Part shown: piece after piece, positions 17,855 through 38,800 of the stretch
Layout of the letters: every line of letters starts with the position of its first letter
Position numbering within the stretch: the stretch's first letter is position 1
NCBI GenBank assembly: GCA_964035545.1
Contig: OZ037767.1
Location: 6,278,707 to 6,342,706 of the forward strand
Direction of reading: 5' to 3'
DNA length: 64,000 nt
DNA from: Bugula neritina
Lineage: Eukaryota > Animalia > Bryozoa
Program-made: the position numbers and the translations under genes
Notes under the pieces: generated by a model
What the model was told of the DNA's origin: nothing
The model's input: only the letters and a program-made list of their open reading frames with translations
The model's database searches: none

Positions 17855-20800
17855 ATGGACTTGTTGGACTCCAAACTGCTTGTTAGTAGTTTAACGAGTT
17901 GCTTAGAAGATTCTTATGAAGGCAATCAGCAGAAGGCTCTGCAACTCTTGCATGCCTCAGCATCTCATAAAGTGAGTTGCAATTGTTCTTTTATCATTTC
18001 TTCTCCGGTTTTAATTAATGTATGATTGTAGTTTATGCTATCATATTGCTGCAACTATTGATGCCAAATAATCTTTTGATCATGTGTATATACCTAACAG
18101 TACTACTATGTGCCAGAGTTTTTATTTATCTCTCATAATCTAATAATTAGAGTTAGTTCTTTCTATGCTGATTCACTGTACGCGTCATTAATTAAAATAC
18201 AGATCTTACAGTATACAGCATAATATTCTAGTCCTGATTATTACCACTGCCTACAAAACTCATTGCAGGAGCTGTTGGACACTAAAGGTATTCTGAGAGC
18301 ATTTCAGTACTTATACAGCAGTAGAACCCAAGACTCCATTTCTGCTGCTTATCTCCTCCTCGCTGCCTTCGCTGACTCTAGTAGAAGTATAGATGCAGTC
18401 CGAGAACTCAGCACAACCTCCCCTTCCTTAGTCGATATTGTGAGTCTGGCTAACTATTTATATACATATATAATCATATAGTACGTATATAATATGATTA
18501 TATAGTATATATACATATATAGTCATATAGTACGCATATTATATGATTATATAATATATATATATACTATATAATCATATAGTATATACACTATATGATT
18601 ATAACAGTATGTATGCTATACGTTTATATTATATTTATATAATATATGCTATATGATTATATATGTTTCAGTTCATCTGCCAACTACTATCTACATTTGT
18701 TCAATCAGTAAATGTTAATCTGTTTTTGAAGTTTATGTGACTAAGAAAGACACTGATGCATCATCCAGATAATAATTTACATTTCAATTTGTCATGTTAA
18801 CCACATTTTATAATACCGCTATTGATTAAACATGTTCATCCGCATTTGAAATGAGATTGTCTACTCGTGTCAACATTGTGATAACTCTTATAGAGTGTGC
18901 TACTCAACGGAGTATCAATCAACAGCAAGAGTGGAAATAAAGAGGAGTTATCTCTCCTTCTCCTACATGTAATATTAAACGTTTTGGAACATCAGGCTAT
19001 TGAGGCAAAACAGGATCTTGTCACTGCCAGCCAGTACTACCCCCTCCACCCTTCACTCCTCTGTCTACGCTACTTGCTGCGGTTAGTGCTTCCACAATTC
19101 TTGTATACACAGAGGAGATGTTTCATACGACCATCCAGACTGCTGTTGATGTTTCAGCACATACTCTGTAAACTCTCAGCTTTTTTCCAAAACCTGAACT
19201 CGATGTGTCTAGCTATTACAATAACACATTTATATTTTATTAGTGCTTCAGGCTCTCTTCATAAGGTGTGTGTTTGCTGCCATGGGGGGAGAGGGGGGGA
19301 GTGAAAAAGAGAACCTTACCATTGTATATTTAATATCTGATGTCCTGGATTTATGACATTCACTAGTCAATAATGGAACTAATCAATGTATTACTAAAAA
19401 TATTCAACATTATTTTGGTTTCAATGTATTTAATATTCAGCTAAGCACTTTTTATTCACAGTGTAATATTATTTATTGTTTAATAAACACCATAAAACTG
19501 CTATATATTAATTTGTGTTATCCTACAGGTTAGGCAAGTTGATGTCTGCATGGTGCAGCATGTAAATATTCAACTCTTCCTTTTACTAATTTATTAGAGT
19601 TTCCTAAAATCAAGGCCATTATTGATGTAATTTACAGCTAATTGTTTAGGGATGAGCTTTGTTTTTCATAGGTTAAATTCATTTTCTGTTTGTGCAGTGA
19701 AAATTATTATGACTCGCGTCAAGTTTGGTGGTGGTTGACTTTAAAATTTCTCAAATCTTAGTAGCTGGACCCTCATTTAAAAATTATTTAAAACTTATTT
19801 GAATATTTTATTGTTGTTTTTAGTTCTGCTGAAATAAAGGATTCCATGAAATGGCAGTTGCTAATAACTCGACTGTTTCATGTGACATTTGATCAGGTTT
19901 ATCCTCTCGTAAATCCTGTGGTCTGTCATTCTTCCCCAGAAGGTTATCTGCCACCAGATGAGAGTGATGACGTCACTGATGATGTCACTGATGATGTCAC
20001 TAATACTAGCAAAGGTACTCCATACAGTTTTACTTCACACTGCACACATGAGTTCATCTGGTGCCTAAACTTAGTGGATGAGGAGTTTTTTCTAGCACAT
20101 TTGCACGAGACCTTATGATATAACATGATCTTTGGTCAAACCTTTCTATGAGCCCTCAAACGTTACTCATTGTGTTGGACATGGTTGTGGTGCAATAGGG
20201 AGGGGAAGTTGGTTATGAAAAAGTTAGTTGTTATATAAGAACACACTTGCTTATGCATGAACAGCCAAAAGTGTAGATATACAATTATGTTTGATTCATT
20301 TCTCTACATGTTTATTCTGTGTTTCTAAATAGCTCTTAAGTTTTACATCTTATATACTATGTTGTGTAGACGTGTCAGGAGGTAAAGCGAGGCCTGGGTT
20401 ACCTCAATTTCTGGTTGTTTGCTGCTGGAGAACAATAAAGGAGATCTCTCTTGTGTACGGAGCATTAATGGAGAAAGTTGTACCACAGGCTGGTGATATT
20501 GTCACCCACAAGCAGGTACCCCAGGTGTCATATAACCACTCATGACTCTGCACTCATGATATGAAGCACTCAGCTACCTTACTACACACTCTACCTTGCT
20601 GGTGCTGGGACTACTTCTACCTGCAGAATCTTGACTCAATAAACCAACTACTATCAAACGCTGCAGATAGCAAAATGTTTATTTTGGGTTTCAGGTGACT
20701 TTACAGAGCTAAACAGACTAGTGTTTTAGTACAGTGCTCTCTCCGTAGCTCACAAACCACTTTCTCACAAGACTGTAGAGTCAACACACTATTATTACAG

Positions 20801-23800
20801 TCCTCCGTACATAGTTCATGGATCATTTTCTCACAAGACTCCATAGGTCACGAGATGGATTTGGACTTCCGCTTTGTTATCGGAAATACTATTGAAAATC
20901 AGCGACATAGCATTTTTTTGTGTGGATTTCAAATTTTAAGTAGTGATTGCCATTATTATGGTAGCTCTTTCTTATATAAATGATGGAGAGGCATGAAATG
21001 TGACTAAAGTTCAAATGCAAAATTGTGTATAAATTAACAGGTTTAGATTAAATATGTTTAAGCCGAATTATTATTCGGTGAGTTAAATCTGGAGTTGAGG
21101 TTTTGGAACCCGTAGTGAGATACAGAGGGAGGATTGTATTAATTTCATTTTTGTGCTAAAGCGAAAGAAATGATTAGTTAACTATTAACACTCCCACAGA
21201 CATTGATAGTACACACCTGTCTCAAGACTGTATTGAATGTTCTTATTACAGATAAGAGAATATATTAAAGTATTTTATGAATCTATACTACTTAATGCAA
21301 AACACAGAGGAGCATTTGAAATGGCATATACTGGGTACTGTAGCTACTGGCACACAATATGGAGGTGAGTGACAAGTGTAGCACATCACGTGACTAGGTT
21401 GAGCAGGTGGAACAAGTTGTTTCATCTGATGCCACACTGACTCAGTAACCCAGTTAATTCATATGTTTTTATTCTGCATATTGAATAGCCAACTGGTACA
21501 AAAACATTGCCAATGTTATCACTATACACTAATCTTATAAGAATGCATTTGCTGAGTTAATTTATTCAGGTTTTTTAGTAAACCTTTTATTAAAAATTTA
21601 ATTACGTTGAAGTTAAATGTAAGATTTAACGTTTTATGAGCTGTTGATGAATAAAACAGGTATTTATGTGTAGCCTACTTGTGATATAAAACATACTAAG
21701 CTTTGCTAGGCTAGCGAGTGTTGATTTAAACAATTGCTGCATGTTTTAGACTGGACAACTCCCGTTCCTTCGTATCAGAATTTCTTAATGATAGTCCGTA
21801 TTCAATGTTACTATCCAAAGAGACTGCAGAGAGTCTATGCGCTACCAGAAGGAGCGCTGGTTTACCGTTTATGGTTCAGGCCTTCGTCACTTCAGAGCCA
21901 AAACACAACAACCACTCTGCTTTGAAGAAGGTTATCCGTGACTTACTCGACATTCAGCTGTATGTCCAGGGTAAGTTTCTCTCTCAGCCTGCATTGCTTT
22001 GTTATATCCAGTGCATACACTCAGTCATGTACGTATGGATTCACACAATTCATAGTGAAAGTAAATTTTGTTTTCCAAACGTTTAGCTAAATCTTGATGT
22101 GATGGTTTGTTACAAATTCTACGAATTTCGCTGATATACAAGTTCTTAAGGAAATCACACAAGTGTATAGGCACCATGTATTTACTTAGCAGTATTCTAG
22201 TATTCCTTCTTAAGTCAGGTTTAATTGTGAATGTATCGAAGATGAACTCACTCACGCAAGTTTATAGTCACCATCCCTGTGAGAAACCCCTGATAGAAAG
22301 GGTTTTTAAATCGGCTAAGGACTTATTCAGATGGGGCACAGAAGCAATTATGACTGAATGCTCCTTGGATGCTTCTTCTAACATCACCAATGGCCATTAC
22401 TGGGGTTTGAAGCCATGACTACGTGTTTACTAAGCCAAACGCTCTAGACCCTAGACCACGGCTGCTCCCTGCATACAAGTGTTTAGATAAAGCTTTATTT
22501 CTTTTTGTATTTAGTAAGGCGAGGCTATTAGCACTTGATACAAGTTGGTAGTTGTCTTCTCTCTGACTGACATACTAATAGTAGCTGGTGGTGGTGTCTT
22601 GTAGGAGATGGAGAAGTAGAGTTGTACAGTCAGACTCAGCTGGTACATTCTCTCAACGTGCTCAGAGCTCTCTTCAGGTCATCTAATCTCGGAGACGCTG
22701 TCCAGCCGTATGTTGGTGACGGGCTAAAATCAGCGGTGAAAGGTTATCAGTCTCAGGTGAGAGGTCAAAGGTCACGTGTCTGATTAAAGCATATGGTGAT
22801 GTAATAAACTTGAAAGAGGTAGCCTACCCATGACTCACCACATCATTTGTGGAGTTCTGTGCCCTTTTTATGAGCCGCACATCTTCATCTTACAAAGAAA
22901 CTTTTGATGTGATCAGAATTTAGCTTGTAAGTTATGTGTTGCACTTGTTTTTTTTCACACGGGTTTAGAGTCGCCACCCTGTGAGAACCCCTGATGGAAA
23001 GATTTTTTAGTGGGTTGAGGACTTATTTTCTAGTGTGACAAAAGAACAGCTCTAACTGAATTCCCTTCATAACAATGACAATGGTGTTTGCTGAAAGTCG
23101 AATCACTGACCTTGTGTTTACTAATCCAGTTCTCTAACCACTGGATTGTGGTTGCTGCCTCATGCATTGCATTTGTTGACAAACATTAAATAGTACATTG
23201 TATTTCACTAGTAAAAGACGGAAGGTTTGAATGTAATTGCTTTGCAAAGCATTACTTGGTCTCTGAAACCGCAATGCAGACAATCAGTATGCTGAATGTA
23301 AATATTGTGCACATGTATAGGCGTGGCCTGTCAGGAACGCATCTACCCTGCTGTTCAGTGCCGTGATAACTCGTATGTTCGGAGTCAAGGTGGGCAAAGA
23401 TGATCTGAGTAAACACACTGGCATGGCTGGTCAACTTTTCTTTCAGAAGTTTCCGGAAGTCCATCCGTTCCTTCTGCAGGTGACTATATATTAAAACTTT
23501 GTGGTAGTTTTATTGCAGTTGATATCTCAACAGTAAGTAGTGAATTCTATACAGTAGATGGTGAACTATAAACAATAATGGAAGCTGCTGTCATGGAAAC
23601 AGATAGCGCCACCTGTCACAGCGTAACTACTTTCTTTATAGCTTCTACTTAAATGGCGAATATTATCTTAGCTCATGTGAAGTTAATATTCGACTGTTTA
23701 TGTGTACAAAGTAACATAGAATCGTATATTATAGCTGCTACCCACTAAATGGTCATAATCTAAGACTGGGTGTGCATCACGGACTAATTTTATAACCGAA

Positions 23801-26800
23801 AGTTTTTTGTTTTGTCCTTCGCTCACATCAAGTCATGTGGTCACGACCTTTATGTTTGTATGTTTCACTTCTTATAACAATATATACATTAGCGGCTAAA
23901 CTGTAAAAAATAGGTAAAGACTATAAATCTATAGTGTGTAATAAATTAAGTAAAAACACCCACACCTATACGTAGTGTTAGTCACTGGTTTACAGGCTAC
24001 TGACTTTATCTGCTGCAGGAACTGGACAACTGCACTTCTTTCAGATCTCCTGGTGGCAAGACACTGCTTCAGCCCAACCTCTACTTGCTACTCATTGTCC
24101 TGTGTAAACTCTACCCATCACAAAGAGATTCGGGAGGTGCTAGCCTCTCTCTAGAGGTCTTTGTACCCTACATACACAGGTATTCATATATAGACTTGTT
24201 GGTACGTCATGTAGATGAGGTCCGGGAGAATCAGCTAGTATATTGTATCATGTGATTTCAGATGCGCTGCCAGTCCTGTATACAAAATAAGAATGCTGGC
24301 AGCGATAGCTCTGTCCAATGTGTTAGACCGTGACCTTTTGACCTTGAAGAAGACCTCCACTGACCTCTGTGATCAGATCATGCTGACAGGCTGCCACAAC
24401 TCTCTGCATGGACTGCTGCTTCAAATTTTATATCTGTACAGTATGTTGCTGACAATTATATAATTCAATCACTTGTGTTTATACCTAAAAGTCTGAATGT
24501 CTGAATACATACACAGAGGTAGGTGCAGTAATGGAGAAATTGAGAAAAGCCTGTGTTCTAGATCGGAAATGTAGAATAAGAAGTTATGTTCTCTTGAGAA
24601 TTTCAACCCCGCCCCAAATCAAAGTTTAATAATAAAATTAAAGAACTTAGTCTATCTCAATTTCTCCACTACTGCTCGTAAATAAATATGTTTATTCTTC
24701 AACATGGACTAATCATTTACTTCATGTGTTACATGTTTTATATACTGAGTTCTATTTACATTATCTAGCGTCCTCTCCCACATCAGAAGCTGACAACTCC
24801 GAGTGCTACTTTCAGCCAGTGCTGGAGATGATACTAAACACATGTGATAAAATACTTTCAAGGTAAAACTTGTATTTCCCTTGCTGACACTCTACGTAGT
24901 GATTAGCACCTGTAATGGTCAGTGAATCAGTCCTATGACAGCCTGCACTTGTAGCAAGCATGTTCTCCTTTATTTGTTAAATTATTCGTTTGTTATATTT
25001 ATTGTGAAATATAAGTGAAAACATTTAGGAGCAGCCGTGGTTTAAGGGTTAGTTAAACCTTAGGCTTAGTAAACCCGAGCTTATGGGTTCAAAGACAAAG
25101 CCCGTTTGTGATTTTAGGTAAAGCATGTAGTCATAATTTCTCTTGTGCCCCACCTGAATAAGTCCTTTGCCCAATTTGAAGAAAATAATCTTTTGCTACA
25201 TTTATTGTGAAATATATGTGAAAATGTAAGGTTTTATATGTGAATGTTGCTAAATTATTATAATGTATCCAATTAAAATAGTGTCTTTTCTTTTTTTAGT
25301 GCCAGTGAATTGGTTATCTCTACTTACATTGATATCATACTAGCGTGCAAACCTAAGTTCAGTCATGTTCTGAACAATAAAGAAGATGTTTCCCAATTCA
25401 TGCGAAAAGTTCTCTTTTCTGCTGGAGAAAGCGAGAGCTCGTGTGATTGGCTGAGAAGCTGGTCGTCTGCAGGAGTTGATTTGCAGCTCAGCAAATGTCG
25501 TTTGCTGTTAGACTTGCAGGAGCCTGTCTTGTGCACAGAGCAGATGCTGTGTGACTTGCTGTCTGTCTATGGCATGTATGAAGTGCATCATGAAATACTC
25601 TCTACACAGGAAGTGGCAGGTGGGTGTGGCCAGAATAAGGACTCTGCTTTGATTGGCCTATACTTGAACATATTTCCTGTTGTCTAAATTATGTCACAGC
25701 AGTGATATATTCGACGAATAGTTTCACAGAAAATGAATTTGTAACAACTCTTTTCAATACACTATTCATTCAAAAATATGTTGCTTCAGTTTTTTTTTCC
25801 TTTTTTAGCTTTATCAACCAGTTTTAATGATCAGAATATAATATAAAACAATATTATAAATGTTTATTATTGACAACACCATTGTTTTAGATGAAGTTTT
25901 AATCTCAGTCGAGAAGTTATCCTCTCTTATGTTTACCATGATGCAGTGGAACAAAGACAAGTTCTCTTACAGCACAACGCAGTCTATATATCTGGTATAT
26001 GAATTAAAGCTCTTGTTTGTCTATTTCTCTTTACAGCTGGGTTATTGTGACCCAATATATTTATATTATATTATATTCTGAAGTGTATTACATTAGTATT
26101 ATATTTTATTCTGAATGAAACACCATACTGCAATTCAACTGTAAGTATAATACATATACAATATAGTCTAGTTAAAGTATGTTTATAGTTTTCACATGAT
26201 ATGTTCTGAATAATGCCAATGACTCATTGTCGGCCATTATGCTACTCATTGAAAGGGGTGTGGCTCAACATACTATATGGTTACTGTGAATAGTTTCGTG
26301 ACAAATTAATCTAACTTTAAAGATGATTGCATTTTTTTGCATTAGGAATCATAATTAAAAGTATAAATAGATTGCTTACTTACACAAACCAGATCCTATT
26401 AGCACCAAATGGAGTTAATAGTAGTTTAACTTGGAGCTTGTTTTATTCTGTGTATTGTACCGACACTCAAAATAGTTGTAATTAATAACTTGGTTCATAG
26501 TTTATTTAAAACTTGTATTGGTTTGAAAATTTATAATCATGTTTTTAAACACATTAAAAAAATTAAAAACATTAAGTAATTTAGTCAGAATAGCAATTAA
26601 TCATTAACAATGTCATCATGTATCTTGATACCATAAAATTTCTGCTCTCTTTGTAATGTCAAAATAAATACCTAAATCTATAAATTGTTTTTATTCAACA
26701 AATTGGTAAAATTATTTTAGTTTGAGGGTCTGGAATTTAAAAACTTTAGGTGCAATTGTTTTAAGAATGTTTTCTATGCTTGGATGTCATTTTACTGCTT

Positions 26801-29800
26801 GTTGTTTGAATTGTATCAAATACAAAACTGTTCATTTAAAATGGACAGAATAAGTTTTTATTTACAAACAAAAACATAATAAAATATATAACAAATAATA
26901 TATTTTGCGGTGGTGAATGCCAGTGGAAGTGGTTGCCCTCAGGGTGGCCAAGATCTTCTGGGCTGAGACGAGCGGGTATGCTGCTCAAAAGAATGTTTTA
27001 TAGGCAGCATACCCTAAGGCAGTGGCAGCTAGACCCACAGCAGCACAAATACCCACTTTTTTTGCTGTGCTGTATTTCTGTAAATAAATTAATTTAATTG
27101 TTACAAGATGAAGAAGTATGATAAAACAAAACAAAGTAGTGGGTGAGCAGTGATATAAGATATGCAGAAGATAAAAGCATACTCCTATACTTACTTCATG
27201 GGTCTGCCACTGCCTTACATCTGCTCGTCTCAGCCGGCCACCCTGCTCGATGGAATAGACTAAGGGATGATGTTTTTCAACCACTTCTACAAATCATGTG
27301 ATACGCTAACAGCATACTATCAATACTTTTATGATATACTAAATGAGCAGCTATGGTGAGAATACTAACATGGATGCTAAATGAAAATTTGGTCATGATG
27401 ACACACTGGAATATTTTCCTAACCTATTGTTAGCACATTCAGACGTTCAACACTGTTACCTTGTTAGTATGTATCTATCAACTTAACATTTAACAACAAA
27501 GCTATTGACTTACCCACTTTTGTGGGAAGATGCCAAACTGGTGTATCCCTTCTGCAGAAGTTGGGTGTATAGGTGACTTGTTCATGCTTCTTGAAGGGAT
27601 ACACCAGTCGGCCCTCTTCCCACAATCTCCAGTGCAGCTGCCTTTCCTTAATGGACCGCACTGTGGCATTCACCACCGCATACGCCAAGATCTCTATAAG
27701 ATATTCACAACAACATGCAATGTCATCACTAGCAAAACATTAAATATGTTTAAATGTGACTATGCTAAAATTATCAAGCAATAACTTATGCAAGCGAGAT
27801 AGTCGTGTCATGGCATGTTCAGCAGTGATAGTTTTAACATTTATACTAATCGTTTTTAAATAATTTGAATGCTTACCGTTCTTTCGAAGCATCCACAATC
27901 TATCACGTAAGTCAACGTTAGTTGGTGGCACTAAAACACATAGTAGTATATTAAGGCATTGCAGTGACTCACCAAACCTGATAATCTAAGTACATGCAGT
28001 CTAGCAATATTACATTATTTGAAACCCTAAAGCAGTGGCAGCTAGTCCAGCAGTAGCAGTTTTTCCAATTTATTCATTTTACTATAATTTTGTAAATAAA
28101 TTAATTGAATTGCTACAAAGCAAAAAGTCACAGCAAGCACTACCATTTGTTTGAACTAAGACTATAAATATAAAAGATACTTACTGTAGTAATCTGCTTC
28201 AGTCGGGATTTGGGGTTCCGGTATAATCAGATAAGTCTTGGCACTGTTAGCATGCATGGTGGAGTTGGTGGGTGGGATTTCTTTCTCCTCTGGCACCATT
28301 TTCACCTGACCCTGTTTATAGCATGATGACGACATGGTTTTCCGGGGAATTAGTATACAGGAGGTTTTATAGTCTGATGAGTTTGCTAAAAAGTACACAT
28401 GAGTCAATTAAACTACGAATAAAGCATTTTATACACTTACAATCAAATATTATGATTAATTATTATCAATTGACTATAGCTTAAAATTGAGACTAAGCGA
28501 ATAGTGGTCACTACAGATATTAGAAAAATTACTGCTATTTTAAGCATATTAGAGCCATTAAAATTTAATTTTGTCTTTTCCAATAAATAAAATATATTTT
28601 TTAGTAGATATTTTATATTCTTACCTTGCTAGCTTTGACGATCAAGTTCGACTGATTCTTCATCAAAATCTGTCTCCTTTTATATGAAAAAGAACAATCG
28701 GAAGACAATCGAAACTTTTTAATTGGCCGGTAATGGCTTCAAGGTTTACTTGTAAACACCTTATTGGACAGCAATTTTATTCAAGAATTTTTCTCCTCTG
28801 CTCGTAAATTCGTGAAACCATAAAATAATTCTAACAATGTTGCATTGTCATAAGTTTATGTAGAAAATCATGCAACAATTTCAAAAATATTTGAGTTTAG
28901 CCAATAGATTTTTTTCTTCACCTTTAGACATTAATTTTATGTTTATTTTTCTCAATTGCACTAAATAATAGTCAACAATAAAGTAATAATAATATTGCCA
29001 CACTCCTAATACAAATTGTGATATTATATTGATCCACCTCTACTGCTCTTACAGTATTAAATGGCTTATTTTATTTATTCTTATTTTATCCACATACTGT
29101 TTTCAGGTGTCCTTTGATATTGCAGAAATTGTATGTAGAGTTCTTGTATCTGCAGTCATTTGATGAATGATTTAATGTGCCACAGCAATAAAAAGTTTGT
29201 TGAGGCTGTTGGTCGTGTTTTTTGCTAAATTTTCGGTCTGTGTCCACCACAGTTCCAATGCCTCCAGAAAATGTGAAATCTTTATCTTAAGTTTGAACCT
29301 CGAGTTTAGTTCAGCTTCATTTCTTACTGAAGAAATGAATCATTTCATTCATCTTATTGTTCATTCATTGAAGAGAAATCACAAGTCGTCGAATTCTGGA
29401 AATTAGTTCAGGGATTGTCTCTCCCAGTTTTCTTTTTATGTCAACCCATAATCTGTCTCTTTCTCTGATGATTAAAGTTTTTTTCGGTTGTGCTGTCTGT
29501 CCGTGTAATTGTGAATATTATCTATTGATAACTTGATTGTGGGTAGTGGTAAGTGACATATTGTCTCCAAGGTGAAGGTCAAACGTTGTATTCATGTTAC
29601 TTTGCTCTTTGAATCTTTGGGCTCACTCTAATAGATGTTTTATCCATTCTTCTGTAGTGCAACAGCTACTGTAGAAGTTAGTGGAAGCAATAAATGACCT
29701 TCTCTAAACTGCATCAGCAATTGATTTTTTTATTAATTATATGTATATATATAATGATAACATCGCTTTATATGTTATGAATTAAAAGCTGTTGCTCATC

Positions 29801-32815: not shown

Positions 32816-35800
32816 TCATTTCAATTTCTTTTTAGTTATCAGCAATCCATAGTCGTATAGTATCTGTGCCATGTCCACCTTCAAAGTAAATACAGCAATG
32901 ATTAGACAAGTCAGTTATTATATTAGGAGCCAAGTCATACACAGATCTTAGCAAGTGCTCCTTGGTTCTGTGAAATTAATTTGAGTAAGAGTAAAAGGTT
33001 CAGTATCACCATTGCTCCATGGATCAATCTGGTGATGTAATGGGAAAACTAATGAACTGAACACACTTTTCAGATTGAATTGGCTGAGATGGAACTGGAA
33101 TCGGTCCATGGACCAACCGTTGATATGTCCTCCACCACGTGGTAAATAAAAGTTGAAATTGAGATGAATATAATTATTGTCTGTAGAAGCGAATGTGAAC
33201 TACTCCCAATGCTACAGTCAAATTGCATGATTTTTTATTCCGAAATATCCATTAAACCAGTTTGGAGACATCAAAGTTATTGTAAACATCATTAAAACAC
33301 AGGAAGTGACCTCAAACAGGAAAGAACATCACACAAGAGCTTTAGCTCACCTGAGCTGTGACGGTCATGTCCGGTATTTCTGCGATTTGTACAAAGTCTG
33401 GATAAATCCGCTGTAAATATTCTATGCCAGGAGCCAGCTGATTGGGAATACACAGAATAAATGCTGTTAGAAACCGATAAACATTTGACAAAAGCAAAGT
33501 TTGTAATAAATTAGCGAAACACACTGATCCAGTATAAGTTTGATTATTGCTTAACAGTTCAATGGTCAGAATGTATACCATTTCTAGAAGTATACGTCAA
33601 ACTATGAAAACTGCGCATTCTTATTTTTCTTCCATATGACTGTTGAAATGTAAATTAAAAGTGACGACTCGCTATTGGCTGAAAAATGACATTACTGAGT
33701 GAGACTATATACTACACAGTTCAGTTAAACTAATAATAGTTATACTCGGCATTTACCTTTTCATTCACCATGAAGAACTGAAGTTCATTGCCATGGTAAA
33801 GCCGATCATTGTCAGTGTTATAGTAAACTCTAATTTTATGTTCACCACTGTCACCTTGACCTTCTAGTTGATCTTTAGCATCGTCTTCCCCTGAAAGCAA
33901 CATGATGCATACTGGAAAACCATGTGATGAATTTTATGAACACCAACTGCATAGTCTACAGCATAGCAGTCTGTACTTTAAAGCATAGCACAGTTACCTT
34001 CATTATAGTCATTCACAATTCTTATACTGTGTTTTCTTAGCAGCCGCACTTCAACAGTGGAGTCTATAGCGATACAACCTTCAGGCTGGTTTCCCACCCA
34101 CTTGCCTCCTTGTTTTGCTATGCTGTGCTCTTTCTCTCCTGTAGAAACAATTAAGAGTGACATATTGTCATTGTGGGATATAAATAACAAGAGATAATTA
34201 GGAAGCAGAAGTTGCGTCTGATGTCTCTGAAGAAATCTATTTAATTATGATGTAATTGCTTGATTCAGTTTTCTAAACTTTCTCTGGCTGTATTTAACAA
34301 CTTCAAACTCAAACAACTACTAAGTAAGCATCAATTCAGAAAGACACATTTTCAAGTGCAAATAAAGGCCAATTAAATTTTTTTTGACAAATTGATTATC
34401 ATATAAAAAATTGAAAGAAAGTAAGATATAAAGATTACAGTTTTATTACTGATCAGATAGCGTACACTAGATACTGTGTATAGCTACTGTAGTACAGACT
34501 ATGTAGTATTCTACACCTACTTTCGGTTAAGAACGGAGGAAGAGAATCATGAATAAACCTTTTGCCAAGAGCATCACAAGCATCGTCTACAGCTGACGGC
34601 AGCTGCAACTTGTTCATCAGTGCAAACACTTTACGCATCAACACATCACGCTGCTGGGAGGCCTGAATAAAACAACCACATTGTTTAAAAGAGTGTGAAC
34701 CATAAGTCAAACTGCTGCCTTTGTTTTTAACAACCATTTTAACATGAAACATAGATTGTGGAATATCTTTCATTGCCAGCACTTCCTACATTACAAAAAG
34801 GCGAACTCTTCTTCGTTCTAACATAGTGCTATAACAGCAGCAAATATAAATTCTGCAATGCAAAAAGAGAAAGTGACCATTTAGTTTAATCACATAGTGT
34901 ATCTTCAGCACACAGTAGGAGCTTTGACACTTTAGCAGGCTGGAAAAATGCCAGAAATTAACTTCTTACTTGTTATGAACAGATCAAGCTAATAAAGTAA
35001 TGCCAACACATCTACACATAAAGTCAGCCATAACCACATCTACACATACAGTCAGCCATAACTACATCTACACATGCAGTCAGTCATAGCTACAGTTGCA
35101 AAGTACTGCTGACTTACGTCTTGCAGAGCGATGCCGGTATAGTTGAGGAAGTCTATGGGTAGACTTTCCCTGAACTCTGGATCTGATTGGGTCAATTCAT
35201 TCAATGCAATAGGAAGCATCTGCAATACAAATACAGAACATTAGTCATTGTAGTGATGTCACTGAATGACATGTCTAGTGAGACAAGCAGGTGAGAGACT
35301 GACCAGGTGTAGCAGGTTACTCCAGCTGTTCTGTTGGTGTGTAGACAGGGTTATATGCAGAGAGTGTTCATCTTCCTGGGCCATTGCCTGGTGTATCGCA
35401 CCTCTTGGCATATAGAGCAAGTCACCGGGCTCAAGAACACAGTCTATGAGAGGGTTAGACAACTCCTCTTGTGTCAGGTTCGCTATAAGTACAGCAAAAC
35501 TACACATTTGAATTGCACAGAAATGTCGACACACAAATTTAAATAACAAAACATCATTATTCATATTTTAATGGTCACCTATCAAAATCATAGGTGTGAG
35601 CATCTTTCAAACTTTACAAGAAAATTATCAGACCTCAACTTTCTGGTGAGAATGTGAAGCTACTGAACCAAATTCTCACAGAGCAATCATATCATAAACT
35701 GAGAGTTAATTGAAACAAGCATTTATTGCACTGCTTCACCAACTCAACAAGAGAGTAGTAGCCTATCTACAGTGAGGTAAGTACTGTAACACAGCCTACC

Positions 35801-38800
35801 TAAAGTAAGGTAAGTACTGTAACACAGCCTACCTACAGTGAGGTAAGTACAACACAGCCTATCTACAGTGAGGTAAGTACAACACAGCCTATCTACAGTG
35901 AGGTAAGTACTGTAACACAGCCTATCTACAGTGAGGTAAGTAAGTATATAACACATTAGCTACTTACGACTAGAAGTCAGTGGCCACTTCTCACCAGGAT
36001 GGCGAGTCTTGTACACTTTCCAGTGCTTTTTACCTTCCAGCTATAAAATATTTCAACTCGAGATACACACATGCATACAAATTTATCATCTACACAACAT
36101 TGTGACTGATTCTAGAGCGCAAAAATGATGCATAGAATACTAATGTGATAAGTGCATGAGCGGACTTTCGAGTCGTAAAAGGAAGATTTAATCAAGTCAC
36201 TATAACACATATGATTGAGTAAGACTTAAATGATATCAAGCACTTTGTGTAAACAAGTAGAGAACCTGTAGAACAAATGCTTCAATGTCATCATAGTGAG
36301 GTGCAAATCCCTGAGTCCCTGGAGGAGTGAGGTAGACATTAGCTCCTGTCATGCTGCCAAACAGCTCCTGGAGAGAGCCGAGCAGACGCCAGACGTTGGT
36401 AGAGTACGTCTGCGGGTTGAGCAGTCTGACAGAGTGCCCAGCCTGTGAAACCACAGAATCAAAATCTATTGTTACGGAGGCACTTTGACTTATATCTCAA
36501 ATTTTATAACATGGGATAGAATATTAGGAATCACAAAGAACCTAAGCTCACGCATGATAAAAATATCTCACTAATGTGAAACCGCAAGCTTGACACTAGG
36601 AAAGAATTTCAAAAACAAGTCATTGTGAAAAACTTGAACAAGTTTTTATTTAATAAAAAAGTTTAGCAGTAGCAAAAACTGCAGTTAAAAAACATTACGT
36701 GGAAAGTAAACCAAGACAAGCGGCTGGTATTGATTATTCAATATATCATAAATACAGGCAGCTCAACATGACATTATTGAAATATGCTGAAGATCTGAAC
36801 TATAAAAGTATTTCTAAAACATTTAATGTGAAACTATCACCAAAGGTTTCAAAATTGCACTACAAACACACACTTCACAGTATTCATACACACCTCATAG
36901 TATTCATACACACCTCATAGTATTCATACACACCTCGTAGTATTCATACACACCTCATAGTATTCATACACAATAGCTGGGAATGCTCTGCCATGCAGCT
37001 TTGCTGTGTCACGTTCCCCATCTACATACGATGTAATATCCAAGTTCACCCCAAAACGAACATTTTCCTGTAATCATAACAAGAGGTTTGGATAGGATAG
37101 GATGCATGTAATGGTAGCCCTCACACCTCCCCCCTCAGTGTAGAGGCCAACAGTTAAAGTGTAGACATTGATAAAGTTACAAAATATGCACTCAGGTTAC
37201 CAGAACATCTTTATACTATCACAAGGCTCTTTCACAGACGGTAGCTTCCAGCTTATAGTATCTACAGCCTTGTTCTAAATCATAACTGTATACTCAGTTA
37301 GATGATGTAGTGCAGGTTCTATATGGGGGAAGAGGATCCTATAAAACTCTTCAAACCAAAAATGAAAGAATTTAGGTTATTGGAAGTACTCTGTCAGGTC
37401 CACGCCAAGTGGTGAAAAGTCAACTATAGACTATATGCGTTGAATTTACAACTTTTTGTGCTTTCAGTAAAACTAAGCGTGGTATGAATATAAAAATACA
37501 AACCTCTGACAGGATTCGATGAAACTCCTTCATGGAGAACCAATCATCTTCAAAATAATATTCTTTGTTTTTCCTTTGAATATGAAGTGGCTTCTTTAGC
37601 CAGTAGTTCTTGAAAAACTTGAGCCTACTTTCAGGATAAAGAAGCTTCGTTAACAACGCTTTAGCTTCAGTTTCTGGAATAGTATGATTAGGGGCCCCAG
37701 TAGCATCTGCTCGACCACCTCCAACTTTAGAAGAACTGAGTGACGAGCTTGAATTGTGTAGATGGCCATTTGAAAGTGATTCTGTGCCTTGACTCTACAA
37801 AAATTAAACTTATGCCTACAATATATTTCACAAGCGGTACTAGTGCTAGCCACCCGCAATAATGTGAAGAGCCTATCAGCAGGGTTCCAGGCTAACCCTG
37901 GAAATACAGTGGAAGAGTGAGGTGATGCAGAAAACATGCTATTTAATTAGACAACTCCAGAAAATAACACGTGAAGAAAAGTACCGTTTCTCATATAACC
38001 ATTATGGTGTGGCTGGTATTGCAGCATGGTGCATGAATAGTTCTGATGAAAAATTCTTGAAAAAGAACAATGAATTATTTCCACAAATAATCTATGATTA
38101 TAGTGAATACACAAAGGACAGTGTCTTTTCTACAGCTAATGCTGCAAACCCCAAGATATGCTCAACATTTTTCTAAGAGATAATTAAAAATTTGAGCATT
38201 TTACACTAATTTTTAACAAATCAAAATACAAGATATTTTAGACACAATTAATATGAAAGTCTGAGGATTACCTTCAGACTCTTTGTTGACTTTTTGCTGC
38301 TGACCAAACTGGGCGGAGTCCACTCCTTTACTTCCACTTTCTTAGAGACTTTGCGAGACTTTTTAACAGTTTGTTGGGCTGGTAATTCCGAACTTGCATG
38401 TTTCTCAGTTGTGGTGAGTTTGCTGCAAGCCTGAGCACCCAGATTCTCTGTCTGCAGAAACAAGAGTCTAACTTAGAGAGGAAATTTTATGAACTTTGTT
38501 AGAAAATCATTATGAAATGCCTTTTACATTAAACAACTGATATCAACTCATTCATGCAAGTTTAGTTCAGCTATGGTAATCATAGGCTTATTAATACTAA
38601 GTCACCAACCACAAAATCTTATTCACTTTGTAAAACCGTAAATAAGGTACGCAGTGGAAGTGCTTTACAAATTGAAAATTTATTGACTACCAGCTCTCAT
38701 CACGCTTACAGACAGACATCTTCCTAACACCATAATAAACTAAGACTACCCGCCTGAATCTAAATAATATTAGAAAAATAGCTTCAGCTTTCCAAAATCT

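Follow-up and report, generated by a model that had tools for sequence, protein, structure and literature searches.

Introduction

Conserved structure within animal coding sequences is usually short and local, since ribosomes melt it. Larger elements are known elsewhere: the E3 element of yeast ASH1 spans the stop codon, and the 3′ untranslated region (UTR) of Drosophila bicoid forms a large branched domain; both steer mRNA transport. Duplexes bound by STAU1 are symmetric, with about 12 paired bases and few bulges, and the long-range ones associate with low decay rates (PMC10164587). In a canonical primary microRNA (pri-miRNA), the basal stem measures about 11 bp and the whole stem 30–35 bp (PMC12553114). 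Here we analyze a 64,000-nucleotide stretch of chromosome 3 of the bryozoan Bugula neritina (contig OZ037767.1, positions 6,278,707 to 6,342,706; hereafter the window, in whose numbering all positions are given unless a locus is named), taken from assembly tzBugNeri2.1, which consists of 320 scaffolds and a mitochondrion (PMC11480708). On its minus strand lies a six-exon gene with GT-AG introns, whose open reading frame (ORF) of 189 amino acids runs from the ATG at 28335 to the TGA at 26985–26987. The mature mRNA of this gene folds in our models into a single domain in which the 3′UTR pairs back onto the coding sequence (CDS). We consider it very likely that this fold greatly exceeds chance expectation and is maintained by selection on RNA pairing.

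Structure of the fold

The initial annotation of this DNA had described the proximal 3′UTR (26906–26984) as a mosaic of blocks antisense to the spliced CDS, and each block is indeed present. UTR bases 26984–26974 match 27014–27004 in exon 6 (11 bp); 26973–26961 and 26949–26940 match 27223–27245 in exon 5 (13 + 10 bp, with an 11-nt UTR bulge between them); 26939–26936 match 27266–27263 (4 bp); 26935–26922 match the exon 4/5 junction (14 bp in spliced RNA, 10 in unspliced); and 26922–26906 match 27664–27680 in exon 4 (17 nt, one base being common with the preceding block). Exact blocks of at least 8 nt form a colinear chain that covers 64 of the 79 UTR bases, compared with a maximum of 26 in 20,000 shuffled UTRs. 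That the chain skips the introns had been taken as evidence against a simple genomic inverted duplication. This argument is weak because unspliced RNA gives nearly the same trunk: its chain covers 61 bases, RNAalifold returns the same trunk from unspliced copies, and splicing-dependent trunk pairing amounts to only 4 bp, in helix P4 at the exon 4/5 junction. The UTR does skip intervening exon sequence, as had been stated, but what is skipped is mostly engaged in the hairpins of the CDS itself (P2, P3, and P6), bar unpaired bulges of 11 and 17 nt. The UTR, in other words, pairs with what the CDS hairpins leave free.

Spliced RNA models were assembled from the exons for folding. The domain is a single branched structure closed by the 3′UTR, as had been proposed, with a length of 431 nt rather than the suggested ~440; it begins at codon 74, takes in the remaining codons up to 189 (~60% of the ORF) and the stop, and ends at nucleotide 79 of the 3′UTR. 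Its minimum free energy (MFE) of −236 kcal/mol is far below that of dinucleotide shuffles (−137 ± 6.5, z −15) and of synonymous-codon shuffles (−151 ± 8, z −10), and the CDS part alone is also over-structured (z −6.6). The UTR-closed trunk is made up of P1 (16 bp), P4 (14), P4b (4), P5 (10 + 13), and P7 (11). All 68 of these pairs are Watson–Crick in the window copy, with no G-U among them. Three CDS hairpins leave the trunk, P2 and P3 at a four-way junction and P6 at a three-way junction.

Exon 4 (27514–27693) provides the 5′ strand of P1 (27664–27680), which pairs over 16 bp with UTR 26906–26921 and closes the domain, the 9-bp hairpin P2 (27630–27663), the long hairpin P3 (27520–27625), and the initial 5 nt of P4. 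P3 comprises an invariant 11-bp lower stem, an internal loop, an upper stem of 15–20 bp, and a variable loop of 26–38 nt. Exon 5 (27195–27286) contributes the remainder of the P4 5′ strand (27278–27286) and those of P5 (27223–27245) and P6 (27198–27217), together with two variable bulges. In the coding part of exon 6 (26985–27077), the P6 3′ strand (27015–27038) and the P7 5′ strand (27004–27014) run through the stretch encoding a putative membrane anchor (~26997–27053), and the TGA sits atop P7. The UTR then supplies the 3′ strands in the order P7, P5b, the 11-nt bulge (26950–26960), P5a, P4b, P4, and P1. Within this bulge lies an 8-nt self-complementary word, kept in most copies of the gene, which could serve as a loop–loop dimer contact; its invariance in the intact copies is not significant, as most of the region is equally invariant.

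Two of the functions originally suggested for the fold, those of an RNA thermosensor and of a fold-back translational lock, the latter taken as a hok-like lock on initiation, are extremely unlikely given this architecture. A 3′ end folded back over the ORF of a membrane protein does recall type I toxin mRNAs (PMC5416894). In our fold, however, the start codon and the 5′UTR lie outside the domain, which starts at codon 74, and are only weakly paired. Nor does the trunk melt in the physiological range: its modeled pair probability is 0.98 at 10–50 °C and still 0.91 at 80 °C.

Gene copies and selection on pairing

A family search covering the 216.0-Mb genome (321 contigs) returned about 25 related places. 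Four of them hold intact copies: A1, the window gene; A2, located 43 kb from A1 and 96% alike; and B1 and B2, which encode 187 amino acids and have an exon 4 that is 72% alike to that of A. A fifth intact exon 4-to-UTR sequence, Bx, stems from another colony (L027); among the five, identity in exon 4 falls to as low as 71%. Copy C has a stop in exon 5 ahead of the anchor and a deletion of ~65 nt of the UTR strand, and some 20 copies on chromosomes 3, 5, and 7 have stops or broken splice sites. Judged from these sequences, this is a birth-and-death family with four intact and about 20 dead members. Folding energies lie between −236 and −247 kcal/mol in the five intact copies (A1, A2, B1, B2, and Bx) and between −93 and −143 in the broken ones; the fold never occurs in a copy lacking the ORF, nor the full ORF in a copy lacking the fold.

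RNAalifold recovers P1–P7 from the five intact copies. Both sides of a pair have changed once in P1 (U-A to C-G in the B copies, beside three G-U changes), once in P2 (a terminal pair), and twice in P3 (compensatory between A and B), and there are several G-U changes. Most tolerated changes in fact produce G-U pairs, which points to pairing at the RNA level because only RNA keeps G-U. When the 81 changes from A1 to B1 were randomized by region and codon position, the result was −162 ± 8 versus an observed −236, none of 300 randomizations being as stable. Moving only the synonymous and UTR changes gave −198 ± 7.5 versus −235 observed for A1 to B1 and −207 ± 9 versus −245 for B1 to Bx, again with none as stable (0/160 each); for A1 to A2, 6 of 160 were as stable. 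Between A and B, third codon positions differ at 2 of 29 paired sites, as opposed to 12 of 17 unpaired ones. This comparison of paralogs and orthologs backs the proposal of selection on the mature mRNA to adopt a single branched structure closed by the 3′UTR. About 60% of the ORF would then carry an additional, RNA-level constraint, strong enough for third codon positions to be fixed.

Several observations limit this conclusion. Covariation is weak on the 68 originally annotated pairs, where the keep/break count is 6/5, versus 65/156 in broken copies (p 0.10). The five breaks fall in one junction pair and in the 4-bp block 26939–26936/27266–27263, which the paralogs do not keep. A more favorable keep/break count of 11 to 1 (p 3e-5) was obtained on helix cores picked after seeing the data, and other silent-site counts were not significant (p 0.06 and p 0.28). 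Only two deep lineages, A and B, are available, and both belong to one species complex. In the broken copies, the joint loss of fold and ORF may reflect nothing more than an end to their expression. Finally, the 3′ part of A and B looks to have been homogenized by gene conversion, intron 5 being ~90% and intron 4 ~75% alike between them. The invariance of P5–P7 is weak evidence for this reason, and the strongest evidence of selection resides in P1–P4, whose CDS strands lie outside the converted tract. Outside that tract, 1 of 30 partner sites differs, compared with 28% of sites in exon 4.

This homogenization would suit a reading in which the UTR is a relic without function, left over when a reverse transcriptase snapped back on the gene's own mRNA, jumped the hairpins, and made an antisense copy; recent origin and gene conversion would have preserved it. 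The UTR may well have originated by such snap-back. The all-Watson–Crick trunk and the jumps at the hairpin bases, which fall 0–5 nt from the bases of P6 and P2/P3, are compatible with antisense templating on the folded mRNA; selection for pairing would yield the same pattern. As an account of why the pairing persists, the relic is highly unlikely and already largely refuted. The UTR predates the A/B split and is also present in deep broken copies, the low divergence of the partners outside the converted tract is unaccounted for, and the silent-site simulations reject neutrality. Arms of 10–17 bp are, moreover, too short for DNA-level correction.

Some further features of the family may be recorded. 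In copy C (L005:1990-2240), the frame is open to a TAG that closely precedes the last junction, the anchor and the UTR clamp are both missing, and a G-C pair of P7 has changed to A-U; this copy is either a soluble variant or a dying one. Broken copies cluster on chromosome 5 (G000:C5:10.30-10.38 Mb and 14.56-14.71 Mb; L011-L021), some with tandem exon 5/6 duplications or intronless exon 5/6 joins, and in one cluster group the 17-nt P1 3′ strand is unchanged despite a decayed partner. On chromosomes 5 and 7, broken copies carry a second copy of the anchor exon downstream of the UTR.

Transcripts and the encoded protein

The predicted splice junctions and the UTR are found in related transcripts. 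Contigs from run X3 contain the joints of exons 3/4, 4/5, and 5/6, and one spliced contig, whose upstream letters are B-type, spans from exon 5 into the UTR as far as 26906. These contigs are 90–99% alike and therefore derive from related colonies or paralogs. The run is labeled as probably DNA, yet the intron-skipping joints in its contigs point to RNA. The 3/4 joint was also found in run X1, and the letters at this joint differ synonymously. Spliced transcripts of both A-type and B-type that contain the pairing arms exist.

The same material bears on a suggested role of the fold as a substrate of ADAR, whose editing would recode the protein or allow read-through of the UGA, as it does at the amber/W site in hepatitis delta virus. 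In the UGA, the A adjoins the 11-bp P7 helix and faces an unpaired C, and bulges could confine ADAR editing. The spliced B-type X3 contig, however, differs from the window at 6 places in exon 6 and the UTR and at 4 in exon 5; counted by hand, these numbers equal those of the unspliced L027. Contigs drop rare variants, but the equal counts speak against majority editing, and high-level editing is disfavored by this one contig. The older copies end in TAA or TAG, and the read-through frame is not conserved beyond the fold. We therefore consider an ADAR function very unlikely. The read-through product itself was rejected as a candidate, as it would end in a CaaX-like word in A1 and not in B. The in-frame openness of intron 5 was likewise dismissed as incidental, being confined to the window copy (a stop interrupts it in the B copies and a frameshift in A2), and inspection by eye revealed no conserved slippery site at frameshift distance from any helix.

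The predicted protein ends in a Gly/Ala-rich hydrophobic stretch, the putative membrane anchor in exon 6, with a Kyte–Doolittle 19-residue mean of up to 1.64. Protein searches were run exon by exon. Pfam gave no family for any exon, with a weak match of the anchor to MitoNEET_N (E 0.15); phmmer against 1.84 billion proteins gave only three fragments of the family itself (P0001, P0002, and P0004) and two repetitive chance matches; word-indexed protein searches added nothing further, and the ESM Atlas held no usable match. The structure model of exon 4, with a confidence (pLDDT) of 55, gave no usable fold. Metagenome, viral, and bacterial collections contained no additional loci of the family. 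As judged by these searches, the protein is a Bugula-specific orphan with no homolog found outside its family.

Sequence comparison nevertheless indicates that the protein itself is under purifying selection. Over exons 4–6, the ratio of non-synonymous to synonymous rates is 0.26 for B1/Bx and 0.08 for A1/A2. Exons 2–3, which lie outside the fold, show 11 synonymous and 5 non-synonymous codon changes (p 0.0006), and A and B differ in length there by multiples of three. In exons 4–5, much of the apparent amino-acid conservation follows the RNA, because first and second positions differ at ~40% of sites in the unpaired parts. The RNA-level constraint also accompanies amino-acid changes, namely Val/Ala in P1 and two residues in the P3 3′ arm.

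A fold of this kind might hold a harmful membrane protein in check, as a brake or tripwire, its stacked GC-rich helices slowing elongation or inviting decay triggered by double-stranded RNA (dsRNA) until viral dsRNA-binding suppressors or helicases release it. The birth-and-death history with its four intact and ~20 dead copies, a fast-changing N-terminus, and an IRF-core-like word in the promoter, noticed post hoc, would agree with such a role. So would copy C, the sole copy with a deleted UTR strand, in that it also has a stop ahead of the anchor. A toxic or immune role of the protein finds no support, and the searches made returned no homolog, domain, or usable fold; we regard the brake as improbable.

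Proposed function

Action in cis is the most likely mode, since fold and ORF are not kept separately in any copy. The fold has to be opened by any ribosome that translates the mRNA and would therefore be complete only on untranslated mRNA. In that state, general dsRNA-binding proteins such as those of the Staufen type, the candidate readers, could attach to its symmetric helices of 10–16 bp, and the bound proteins would compact, store, or localize the mRNA and thereby set its half-life and protein output. Helices resembling Staufen duplexes, that is, symmetric, with about 12 paired bases and few bulges, are present in P1 (16 bp), P4 (13–14), P5b (13), P6 (13), and P3 (15). We tentatively favor such a Staufen-type scaffold for storage, stability, or transport of the gene's own mRNA, a role that we think nearly even in its prospects. 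Against it stands that known STAU1 duplexes lie mostly within 3′UTRs, are AU-richer at long range, and were described in human cells (PMC10164587).

The fold might instead be a substrate of RNase III enzymes, with P3 as an exonic hairpin resembling a pri-miRNA or the entire domain as a Dicer substrate resembling the hairpin RNAs (hpRNAs) of Drosophila; the mRNA would then be cut, possibly yielding small RNAs against its own family. The invariant 11-bp lower stem and the total stem of ~33–36 bp give P3 canonical pri-miRNA size, and long, branched precursors arose repeatedly in invertebrates (PMC12553114). A and B have a 10-nt core of the P3 5′ arm in common. hpRNAs are, moreover, spliced and polyadenylated and occur in young multicopy families (PMC10317233). 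The arms of P3 differ between A and B outside this core, though, and P3 is embedded in a four-way junction with flanks of 1–4 nt, while the longest unbroken helix of the domain measures 15–16 bp. In copy C, P3 decays despite most of the promoter remaining. An Rfam scan found no family at threshold, three weak matches to miRNA models being far below it, and no match was found outside the family, in a search that short seeds would escape. Full spliced transcripts are present. An RNase III substrate thus seems somewhat unlikely. A search for an RNA-dependent RNA polymerase gave no match, and its positive control gave none either.

The family brings its own controls, with two intact subfamilies, a clamp-less copy, and about 20 dead copies, which allow a direct approach to whether a long CDS–UTR duplex stabilizes, stores, or silences an mRNA.

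A second CDS–UTR duplex in PEX11

A comparable arrangement was found on chromosome 1 (G000:C1 near 25,995,000), where the 3′UTR of PEX11 (L030:1354-1401) is antisense to its own coding exon 2 (L030:2681-2728). As DNA, 44 of the 48 bases are complementary; as RNA, 47 of 48 pair, three of them as G-U. The PEX11 mRNA folds at −232, versus −192 ± 3 with a shuffled UTR, and a second CDS–UTR block of 9 bp occurs in order. PEX11 is an unrelated, conserved gene, and its duplex is one long AU-rich helix in place of the GC-rich mosaic of the window gene.

This second case hints at a wider habit in a little-studied phylum. One could extend it to the view that antisense copies of a gene's own CDS in the 3′UTR are a recurring regulatory device of Bugula, found here and in PEX11, both of which encode membrane proteins. 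The resulting fold, complete only while the mRNA is untranslated, would report the translation state to the dsRNA machinery and, in the window gene, would restrain a membrane-anchored defense or selfish protein until dsRNA-binding factors are removed. We think this broad proposal unlikely. Further PEX11 matches (L031-L033 and L036-L037, on unplaced contigs C39, C42, and C66) have TAA or TAG within the frame; they seem to come from a co-assembled organism that uses a different genetic code, for example a ciliate.

Other features of the locus

Upstream of the gene, a candidate promoter block recognized from motifs alone (28677–28767, minus strand) is kept in A1, A2, B1, and B2. It includes two CCAAT boxes (28763–28767 and 28722–28726), the IRF-core-like word (28707–28716), and a TATA box (28677–28684), the latter two altered in copy C, as well as a doubled CGATTG. 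Exon 1 (28625–28655) is 5′UTR, with a GT donor at 28624 and an approximate start set by the TATA box. Intron 1 (28386–28624) is missing in A2, is single-copy in the genome, and is flanked on both sides by a 6-bp direct repeat; it looks like a recently gained, spliceable insertion. The repeat provides its acceptor AG. Exon 2 (28185–28385), which contains the ATG, is followed by an intron that holds a degenerate duplicate of the end of intron 5 and exon 6, including the anchor (27995–28118), also found in A2, and then by exon 3 (27877–27930). The distal, AU-rich 3′UTR (26840–26905, its end approximate) contains the poly(A) signal AATAAA at 26857–26862, which is kept in A1, A2, B1, B2, and C. Two AU-rich 9-bp hairpins follow the domain (26854–26906), one of which would hide this signal; they are weaker in the B copies.

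Exons of THADA lie on the plus strand at 19792–24252. Sequences resembling splice sites occur near 25620 and 29909, so that the gene is probably nested within an intron of THADA; the paralogs have other contexts. A minus-strand JmjC gene (RIOX1/NO66-like) at 35262–37794 converges on THADA. A check by eye of the ends of the 2.5-kb unit showed neither terminal repeats nor target duplications that would indicate carriage by a transposon.

Comparison with known systems

In the literature searched, which is incompletely covered, no animal mRNA of this design was found; the fold is thus a candidate for a previously undescribed mode of mRNA control. The duplexes of the STAU1 hiCLIP atlas (PMC10164587) come close in being intramolecular, symmetric helices of at least 10 bp that span hundreds of bases in coding mRNA. 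Those of Bugula, known here from sequence and folding, differ in joining CDS to UTR, tiling nearly the whole proximal UTR, being GC-rich, and forming one branched domain. The Drosophila hpRNAs hp-pncr009, Nmy, and Tmy (PMC10317233) are, like the window transcript, spliced and polyadenylated fold-back RNAs of young multicopy families, polyadenylation being judged here from the poly(A) signal rather than a tail. They have long inverted-repeat arms and yield Dcr-2-dependent small interfering RNAs of 21 nt, whereas the Bugula RNA has retained an ORF under selection and contains no unbroken helix above 16 bp; its longest arm is 23 nt on one strand, with the 11-nt bulge opposite. P3 shares its dimensions with invertebrate pri-miRNA hairpins (PMC12553114) but is coding on both arms and lacks single-stranded basal flanks, which measure 4 and 1 nt in the spliced fold, and its shared 10-nt core falls short of a conserved 22-nt strand.

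In the type I toxin mRNAs hok and aapA1, the 3′ end likewise folds back across the reading frame of a membrane-inserted protein. These mRNAs are bacterial, with the initiation region buried in the fold and a matching antitoxin RNA, whereas initiation in the Bugula mRNA lies outside the fold and the protein, at 189 amino acids, has no known toxicity. With ASH1 E3 and bicoid, the Bugula fold has in common a conserved structure over the stop codon and a large branched domain, respectively; it has no sequence relation to either, and neither is known to tile a UTR against its own CDS. The fold thus falls under the definition of no named family among those tested, and what it resembles is the known long-range, cis-acting mRNA duplexes.

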